From NCBI GenBank assembly GCA_037447605.1, contig CM074805.1:4807361-4871360 (forward strand): DNA of 64,000 nucleotides, written 5' to 3'. Source of the DNA: Zygnema circumcarinatum SAG 698-1b (lineage: Eukaryota; Plantae; Zygnematophyceae). Shown here in pieces: positions 45,827-46,928 of this stretch (within the stretch, counting starts at the first letter, position 1; each line of letters starts with the position of its first letter). The translations under genes and the position numbers were made by a program. The notes under the pieces are model-generated. The model was given only the letters and a program-made list of their open reading frames with translations, had not been told where the DNA came from and ran no database searches.

Positions 45827-46928
45827 ATGTCCGCCACGGCTCCCTCTCCGACCGTCGTCCCCCAGCACCCGCGCTTCCACGAGCTCTACGCCACGTGTCA
45901 CAAGGAGCGCCACGCGTCGCCACCTGGAAGCTGCCTATTGGTCCATTATTTCGAGTTTTCCGGCGACCGCCGTTGCGACGTGTGGCCTCTCCTCGCGGAC
46001 TTCGCCGCCGCCAAAAAGTATCAGCCGCTCGTGGAAAGGTCCCCCACCCCCCTTCCCACACCAAGGGTTTAGGGCTGAGGGCTTATTATCTACGTATTTA
46101 TCATCTTATCGTGAGTCAAGTTTTTTAATCCCTACTTAAATGTGGTCACATTTGGTTGAATTCAGTTGATATTTTGATTCTAATTGACCAATTTAACATG
46201 AATTGGTCGTTTTTCTTCCCTCTGCATGCAGCTGCATGGCGGCGGGCGGGAGGCGAGTGCTCAAGATGTGCGCGGCCGCAGCACCGCTCGTGGCGATGAC
46301 GGAAGTGCTGACGTCATGCGATGAGAAGAAGGGCGTCATGACGTGGGTAGGAGAGGAGACGGAGGGCTTTCCCTTTCGGGTCCGTTTTCTCTCTCTCTCT
46401 CTCTCTCTCTCTCTCTCTCTCTCTCTCTCTCTCTCTCTCTCTCTCTCTCTCTCTCTTCTCTCTCTCTCTCTCTCTCTCTCTCTCTCTCTCTCTCTCTCTC
46501 TCTCTCTCTCTCTCTCTCTCTCTCTCTCTCTCTCTCTCTCTCTCTCTCTCTCTCTCTCTCTCTCTCTCTCTCTCTCTCTCTCTCTCTCTCTCTCTCTCTC
46601 TCCCTCTCTCTCTCTCTCTCTCTCTCTCTCTCTCTCTCTCTCTCTCTCTCTCACCCCCTTCTCTTCTTTACATTTCTACATAAATTTCTTGAAATTTGTT
46701 TTAATTCTTAAACGTGTAACGGAATGTTGAACTGTGAAACTGCAGACATGTAGAACAGTGCTGTCCGTACACAATCTGGAGTCCAGGAAGCGATCGCGGA
46801 AATCGACGGTCCTGATCTGGTCGTGCTCGTTTCAGCCAATCAGCGAAGAGGACTGCGAAGCCGCCAAAATGCAGGTCACGAACTACATTCAAATATGCGG
46901 CGGCAGCCTCAAAACTCTCTTCTGGTGA
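45827..46928 (+). CDS. START/Bet v1-fold (Polyketide_cyc2) protein, divergent PYR/PYL/RCAR-like
   Basis: Exons 45827-46038, 46232-46379 (or 46346) and 46746-46928, in frame. Translation: ...HASPPGSCLLVH...DVWPLLADF...KKYQPLVERSC...RRVLK..AAPLVAMTEVLTSCDEKKGVMTW(VGEETEGFPFR)TCRTVLSVH...STVLIWS...ISEED. By eye it aligns end to end with PYR1-type proteins. Confidence 0.75.
46389..46652. repeat. (CT)n microsatellite in intron 2 of the PYL-like gene
   Basis: Directly visible. Confidence 0.95.

Follow-up and report, generated by a model that had tools for sequence, protein, structure and literature searches.

In the PYR/PYL/RCAR proteins (PYLs), the gate loop CL2 reads 'S/TGLPA', or 'S/TGL/IPG' in algae, and its serine contacts the PP2C (PMC12717121). 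Dependence on ABA needs an invariant CL1 lysine, which is an arginine in the Mesotaenium PYLs, together with the CL2 leucine (PMC12717121). In the characterised PYLs of Zygnematophyceae, the gate is retained as S/TGL/IPG and the lysine site is occupied by a basic residue (PMC12717121). Inside this class, PYL homologues radiate independently, and recognisable members are found only in Serritaeniales and Zygnematales, with losses inferred elsewhere (PMC13730384). According to the current view, Zygnematophyceae have few PYLs; these are recognisable, bind PP2Cs independently of ABA and are patchily distributed over the orders (PMC12717121, PMC13730384). At the level of gene structure, the PYLs of subfamily I are characterised by two introns and three exons (PMC7526420).

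The locus considered here lies in a 64,000-nucleotide stretch of the genome of Zygnema circumcarinatum SAG 698-1b, referred to below as the window. A preliminary description had read it as a three-exon gene for a divergent PYL-like protein of about 170-180 residues, devoid of the canonical gate, latch and ABA-binding residues and possibly produced with or without the latch loop. The present analysis upholds one part of that reading, namely a real spliced gene whose product probably has an SRPBCC-type fold; the specific tie to PYLs and the latch-less isoform found no support. The interpretation to which slightly better than even weight is given is that of an intact, transcribed nuclear gene encoding a soluble protein of 180 residues, which would belong to the Bet v 1-like/SRPBCC (Polyketide_cyc2-type) proteins as a strongly diverged and lineage-restricted member.

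Gene structure and composition

Direct reading confirms a three-exon gene on the forward strand at 45827-46928, with the ATG at 45827 (Table 1). Together with a spliced contig of run X2, discussed in the following section, this bears out the proposed exon number and product size, and the peptide strings that had been quoted for the protein, HASPPGSCLLVH, VWPLLADFAAAKKY, AAAAPLVAMTE, EVLTSCDEKKGV, EGFPF, LSVH, TVLIWSCSFQP and SEED, are all present. The codon split by intron 1 (AG/C, the slash marking the boundary) encodes Ser, just before Cys72, and intron 2, in phase 0, falls after Arg120.

Table 1. Features of the three-exon gene and its 5' flank (window coordinates; a slash marks an exon-intron boundary).
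Feature	Position	Strand	Remarks
CT-rich 62-bp tandem repeat, 3.2 copies	45570-45773		adjoins the 5' end of the gene; Tandem Repeats Finder
Minimal 5' UTR	45787-45826	+	contigs of X2 and X3 start at ~45778-45787; free of ATG from there to 45827
Exon 1, coding	45827-46038	+	70 codons plus 2 nt; a run X2 contig ends exactly at 46038
Intron 1	46039-46231	+	193 nt, GT..AG, phase 2, GC 0.40; joint in run X2
Exon 2, long form (as in the spliced contig)	46232-46379	+	1 nt plus 49 codons
Alternative in-frame GT donor (tgg/GTAGGA)	46347-46348	+	would remove VGEETEGFPFR; not seen in the placed contigs
Intron 2	46380-46745	+	366 nt, GT..AG, phase 0; contains (TC)x133 at 46388-46652
Exon 3	46746-46928	+	60 codons plus TGA (46926-46928); starts directly after CTGCAG

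Two donors are available at the end of exon 2, at 46346 (tgg/GTAGGA) and at 46379 (cgg/GTCCGT), and the frame is kept by either. The donors in use both read G/GTCC and both acceptors read CTGCAG/ (46039, 46380, 46231 and 46745). The short donor (tgg/GTAGGA), which is not used in the spliced contig, looks nearer to the usual plant consensus. The CT-rich repeat upstream could belong to the promoter or to the 5' UTR.

The exons have GC contents of 0.64, 0.65 and 0.52, and the introns of 0.40 and 0.46. GC3 is the highest of the three codon positions in three out of three exons (0.79, 0.80 and 0.70), which is the usual coding signature. The exon 1 product comprises an N-terminal extension of about 35 residues, followed by a putative beta1 and the DVWPLLADFAAAKKYQPLVE helix motif. 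The exon 2 product contains AAAAPLVAMTE at the place assigned by eye to the gate, EVLTSCDEKKGV, and EGFPFR at the place assigned by eye to the latch. Cysteine makes up 10 of the 180 residues.

Transcription and splicing

The stretch 45827-46345 is present in seven public runs from four studies, all of one organism. In run X2, one contig of 194 nt skips 193 letters with GT..AG ends (46038/46232) and continues to 46379. The same contig ends in 16 loose letters, ACATGTAGAACAGTGC, which are unique in the window at 46746-46761, directly after an AG; in shuffles, 0 out of 100 were matched. As these 16 letters represent the start of exon 3 directly after 46379, it is the long donor that is used, which makes a product of 70+1+49+60 = 180 residues. 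The spliced product keeps VGEETEGFPFR, the segment at the latch place. Contigs were placed on 45780-46400, and the support for exon 3 consists of the 16 loose letters.

The gene is transcribed and spliced as modelled, with the long donor; both joints come from one contig of one run, and the records of the runs do not identify them as RNA. A check of both donors in read data had been suggested together with the proposal of an isoform that lacks the latch loop. The X2 contig shows the long donor (46379), and the short donor (46346), which would yield a 169-residue product, was not seen in this one informative run, so that the one spliced contig lends the shorter isoform no support. The practical outcome is a verified gene model with the long donor and a 180-residue product.

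Runs X2 and X3 also contain contigs that are unspliced into or through intron 1 (46009-46289). These could represent pre-mRNA, intron retention or DNA.

It is very improbable that the locus is non-functional, as a spliced non-coding transcript or a decaying gene, or that the joined form in run X2 stems from a DNA retrocopy. Such explanations would fit the record of the runs, the restriction of the joints to a single contig and the coexistence of unspliced contigs. They are opposed by 180 codons that stay open across two phase-matched junctions and by the GC3 maximum, which falls in the annotated frame in every exon. They are also opposed by the lack of a second copy in the window and by the share of sampled words in five runs from three further studies, about 0.58, which is what the exons alone would give (0.54 by calculation).

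Genomic surroundings

About 1 kb upstream of the gene, positions 44363-44776 on the reverse strand hold the first exon of a divergently oriented neighbour. It encodes a Ser/Arg-rich, transit-peptide-like leader of about 100 residues, and the last 19 residues of this leader match the start of mature plant peptide deformylase 1A (PDB 4je6/1zxz, E 0.15). The neighbour and the three-exon gene would share a CT-rich intergenic region. Long repeat arrays, (GA)x155, (TC)x133 and a GAGGGA-type array, lie at 42970-43276, 46388-46652 and 47790-48414, within 5 kb of each other. A perfect tetranucleotide array, (CTGC)x457, occupies 1.8 kb at 38148-39975 with 100% matches and a local GC of 0.72; it could represent a real giant microsatellite or have arisen in the assembly. 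Recognisable conserved exons seem to be scarce in the window; a Pfam search with the ten longest non-repetitive ORFs, which are spread over 6.9-55 kb, yielded no family at E<=0.01.

Searches for relatives

All sequence searches were performed with each exon peptide separately. Pfam and NCBIfam returned no family at E<=10 for any exon peptide, members of the SRPBCC/Bet v 1-like clan such as PF10604, PF03364, PF00407 and PF06240 included. When each exon was compared by phmmer with the PDB sequences, which include many PYR/PYL chains as well as LFS and Bet v 1, no PYL chain was found at E<=10; the matches to designed armadillo repeats, LRWD1 and similar proteins were dismissed as chance rows. A word-index search of a collection of 5.8 billion clusters likewise found nothing for exons 1, 2 or 3. 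For exon 1, this search used region 127-196 of the ORF 45449-46069, and for exon 2 only residues 11-59 of the ORF 46203-46727, which spans the translated (TC)n repeat; in both cases the candidate proteins had about 100-360 residues. The exon 3 query was a 64-residue ORF, for which only proteins of 35-112 residues are seen.

Exon 1 was also searched by phmmer against 1.84 billion representatives, where neither a PYL nor any other credible relative was detected, and the gene's own product is absent from this library. The single match, a 290-residue Cys-rich repeat protein matched in five stretches, was judged spurious. Within the 64-kb window, tblastn of the exons revealed no paralogue. In the tblastn searches against plasmids, the matches of exon 3 lay in non-coding or antisense frames and those of exon 2 on unrelated genes, and both sets were discarded. 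For a profile based on relatives of a Haloferax larsenii protein, only two further sequences were found, too few to be useful, and this approach was dropped. The peptide strings of the 180-residue protein were not found in supplements of PMC12717121. In searches with exon-sized queries, the protein behaves as an orphan.

The weight of these blanks can be judged from a control, in which the PF10604 protein of Haloferax larsenii (2.4e-20 at full length) was cut to the sizes of the exon peptides. Only the N-terminal piece matches Pfam, and the first 35 residues alone score 25 bits. The middle 49 and the last 60 residues of the same protein give no Pfam match at E<=10. It follows that a blank for exon 2 or exon 3 is uninformative and provides no argument against SRPBCC membership. 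Since the N-terminal control piece matches and exon 1 does not, exon 1 has truly diverged from the family consensus. It counts against the SRPBCC reading that no exon peptide has a statistically significant match to any SRPBCC family.

Leads to a helix-grip fold

Three leads, weak but independent of each other, point to the SRPBCC/Bet v 1-like (helix-grip) fold. The top language-model neighbours of exon 3 are fragments labelled 'SRPBCC family' or PF10604 (0.94 and 0.94) and streptophyte Bet v 1/MLP fragments (0.93 and 0.91), with one PF03364 row at 0.87 (recognition 2995). For exon 1, all neighbours that carry a family belong to COXG, Polyketide_cyc or Polyketide_cyc2, at 0.80-0.84. In the calibration of this method, shuffled sequences reach at least 0.9 in 4-10% of cases and at least 0.8 in a third; the exon 1 scores, below 0.9, are at noise level, and 0.94 with 161 shared features, as obtained for exon 3, is ambiguous. 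Either result taken alone could be reached by chance; that both exons, searched separately, lead to one clan is less easily a matter of chance, and this is regarded as a lead.

The second lead comes from plasmids, 7.3 Gb of which were searched with exon 1 by tblastn; eight weak rows resulted. In one of them, the match falls in frame within an annotated SRPBCC gene of Haloferax larsenii, over its first 35 residues. Residues 46-70 of exon 1 align ungapped with residues 11-35 of this protein, 12 of the 25 being identical (DVWPLLADFAAAKKYQPLVE versus EVWPVLDDFGGVSKYNPNVK), at a database-level E of 6; the pairwise value of 1e-07 was obtained after selection and is not a significance. The match sits where the N-terminal helix motif of the family, 'vW..l.DF.....(W/Y).P.v', is expected. 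Parts of the protein had already been remarked to resemble generic polyketide-cyclase-type proteins, and this archaeal PF10604 motif, the only match at sequence level, agrees with that remark.

Structure prediction adds a third, weak indication. The AlphaFold2 model of exon 3 alone (pLDDT 66) contains two long antiparallel strands (E4-17 and E20-31) followed by a helix (H34-43). A helix-grip domain has the topology beta-alpha-alpha-beta(6)-alpha and ends in a long helix, and the arrangement in the model may correspond to its last third. The exon 1 fragment was predicted as all-helical at a pLDDT of 49 and is unusable as a model; a weak helix is predicted at residues 15-26. When the 60-residue fragment of exon 3 was compared by Foldseek with the PDB, by VIA-align wide and by the Atlas shape search, the matches were generic alpha+beta ones and non-specific. 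The overall length, an extension of about 35 residues plus a domain of about 145, fits a helix-grip domain.

The rival view that these hints are chance resemblances of short motifs, and that the protein is a lineage-specific orphan with another fold or partial disorder, is considered unlikely. It would account for the lack of a significant match in any sequence search and for the non-specific outcome of the fragment fold searches, and the frequency with which shuffles attain high language-model scores is in its favour. It does not readily explain why two separately searched exons fall into one clan, or why tblastn, an unrelated method, arrives at the same family at a motif in the correct position. 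The size and order of the predicted elements, which fit a helix-grip domain, also speak against it. Judged from the exon-level evidence, the protein is probably a member of the SRPBCC/Bet v 1-like (helix-grip) superfamily.

Comparison with SRPBCC and Bet v 1 proteins

The only counterpart at sequence level is the Haloferax larsenii protein WP_258303501.1 (164 residues, PF10604). The N-terminal helix motifs of the two proteins are alike (GDRRCDVWPLLADFAAAKKYQPLVE versus GASRGEVWPVLDDFGGVSKYNPNVK, 12/25), the domain size is similar to that of PF10604 SRPBCC proteins, and fragments of PF10604 proteins are among the language-model neighbours of exon 3. In contrast, no local alignment to WP_258303501.1 was obtained for exon 2 or exon 3. 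The algal protein also differs from this group by the lack of a significant profile match, its extension of about 35 residues, its introns, its 10 cysteines and its eukaryotic origin.

The Bet v 1/MLP proteins (PF00407) belong to the same clan, and 24 streptophyte fragment clusters of this kind, at 0.91-0.93, occur among the neighbours of exon 3. However, the algal protein has no Pfam match to PF00407, and Bet v 1/MLP proteins begin directly at beta1. The glycine-rich P-loop of Bet v 1/MLP proteins is not evident in it. The motifs 'TVLIW..F.P' and 'VW.ll.DF' may resemble those of plant lachrymatory-factor-synthase-like SRPBCC proteins.

Relationship to the PYR/PYL/RCAR proteins

As asserted in the preliminary description, and by its own by-eye alignment, the canonical gate, latch and lysine appear to be absent. 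No exon contains the string SGLP or TGLP, and the gate place assigned by eye reads CAAAAPLVAMTE (AAAPL). The string HRL does not occur in the protein, and the latch place assigned by eye reads EGFPFR (GFPF). In the same by-eye alignment, the place of the CL1 lysine is taken by Gln after a conserved Tyr (KKYQPL), and the place of the CL2 leucine by Ala. The protein is most likely neither an ABA receptor nor a canonical PP2C inhibitor, because the gate place lacks Ser-Gly-Leu, the latch place lacks His-Arg-Leu and the lysine place carries Gln.

The specific kinship with PYLs that had been proposed found no support: no exon matches a PYL chain (E<=10) or PF10604, and the phmmer search of exon 1 returned no PYL. 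On the exon-by-exon evidence, nothing specific to PYR/PYL/RCAR proteins was found. An origin from PYLs nevertheless has points in common with the observed features. PYLs carry an extra N-terminal helix. The algal protein has an N-terminal extension as well, and motifs of PYR1 appear by eye to be collinear with it, namely PGSC, VW..F..Y, SC across the exon junction, P-6-E, E.L...D..+V and SEED. Following 'DF', the sequence KYQPLV resembles the archaeal PF10604 form (KYNPNV) rather than the PYL signature.

The two introns equal the number in subfamily-I PYLs, an agreement in count only, and the literature on PYL intron positions provided intron counts only. The three-exon structure, the N-terminal extension and the collinear motifs are compatible with a PYL origin and do not demonstrate it. 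Compared with the PYR/PYL/RCAR proteins, including the ABA-independent ZcPYL8 and MeenPYL1-3 (PMC12717121), the algal protein probably shares PF10604, is similar in length and N-terminal extension, and comes from a fitting lineage, the sister group of land plants. It differs in that, according to the by-eye alignment, the gate is replaced by AAAPL, the latch HRL by GFPF and the CL1 Lys/Arg by Gln, and in that no sequence similarity is detectable at exon level.

These observations bear on a second rival explanation, in which the gene stems, as an extremely divergent offshoot or paralogue, from the PYR/PYL/RCAR lineage of Zygnematophyceae. Having lost gate, latch and ABA-binding lysine, its product would bind another ligand or partner, and the gene could belong to a small family in this genome. 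This explanation is considered improbable. As PYLs are themselves SRPBCC proteins of the PF10604 type, all SRPBCC leads are compatible with it. The extension before beta1, with its weak helix at residues 15-26, may be set beside the extra helix of PYLs, and the apparent by-eye collinearity with PYR1 motifs is compatible with such an origin. The exon count of subfamily I (PMC7526420) and the independent PYL radiation in Zygnematophyceae (PMC13730384) are further points in its favour. On the other side, no exon peptide matches a solved PYL chain at E<=10, and the phmmer search with exon 1, which carries the best-conserved PYL motif, covered 1.84 billion representatives without recovering a PYL. 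In every characterised algal PYL, S/TGL/IPG and Arg/Lys are kept (PMC12717121), whereas AAAPL and Gln are found here. Moreover, DF....KYQPLV is nearer to the archaeal PF10604 form (12/25) than to the PYL form.

Proposed function and implications

For the preferred reading of a diverged SRPBCC/Bet v 1-like protein, the gene structure, the long-donor splicing, the coding composition and the lack of detectable relatives for each exon peptide are direct observations. The fold is inferred, and so are the pocket and the absence of PP2C action. The layout would start with the extension of about 35 residues; the domain behind it, of about 145 residues, would run from beta1 through two short helices and a beta-sheet to a long C-terminal helix. 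Such a domain would enclose a hydrophobic pocket and may bind a small lipophilic ligand. The 10 cysteines among 180 residues might add redox sensitivity. As the Ser-Gly-Leu of the gate and the His-Arg-Leu of the latch are absent, no canonical docking to clade-A PP2Cs is predicted, and binding of ABA through the lysine would not be expected with Gln in its place.

As no more than a diverged SRPBCC ligand-binding protein, it would add a further lineage-specific member to a very large superfamily and would tell little about the origin of ABA receptors. It is distinctly doubtful, and a little more so than the PYL descent considered above, that the gene is one of a small family of gate-less and latch-less PYL-derived proteins in this alga that have diverged beyond recognition by searches. 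If this were true, the ABA-receptor scaffold would have radiated into PP2C- and ABA-independent functions in the algal sister lineage of land plants, and the apparent 'losses' of PYLs in some zygnematophyte orders could partly be extreme divergence. Expressed gate-less relatives, if placed in or beside the PYL clade, would widen the current view of zygnematophyte PYLs.
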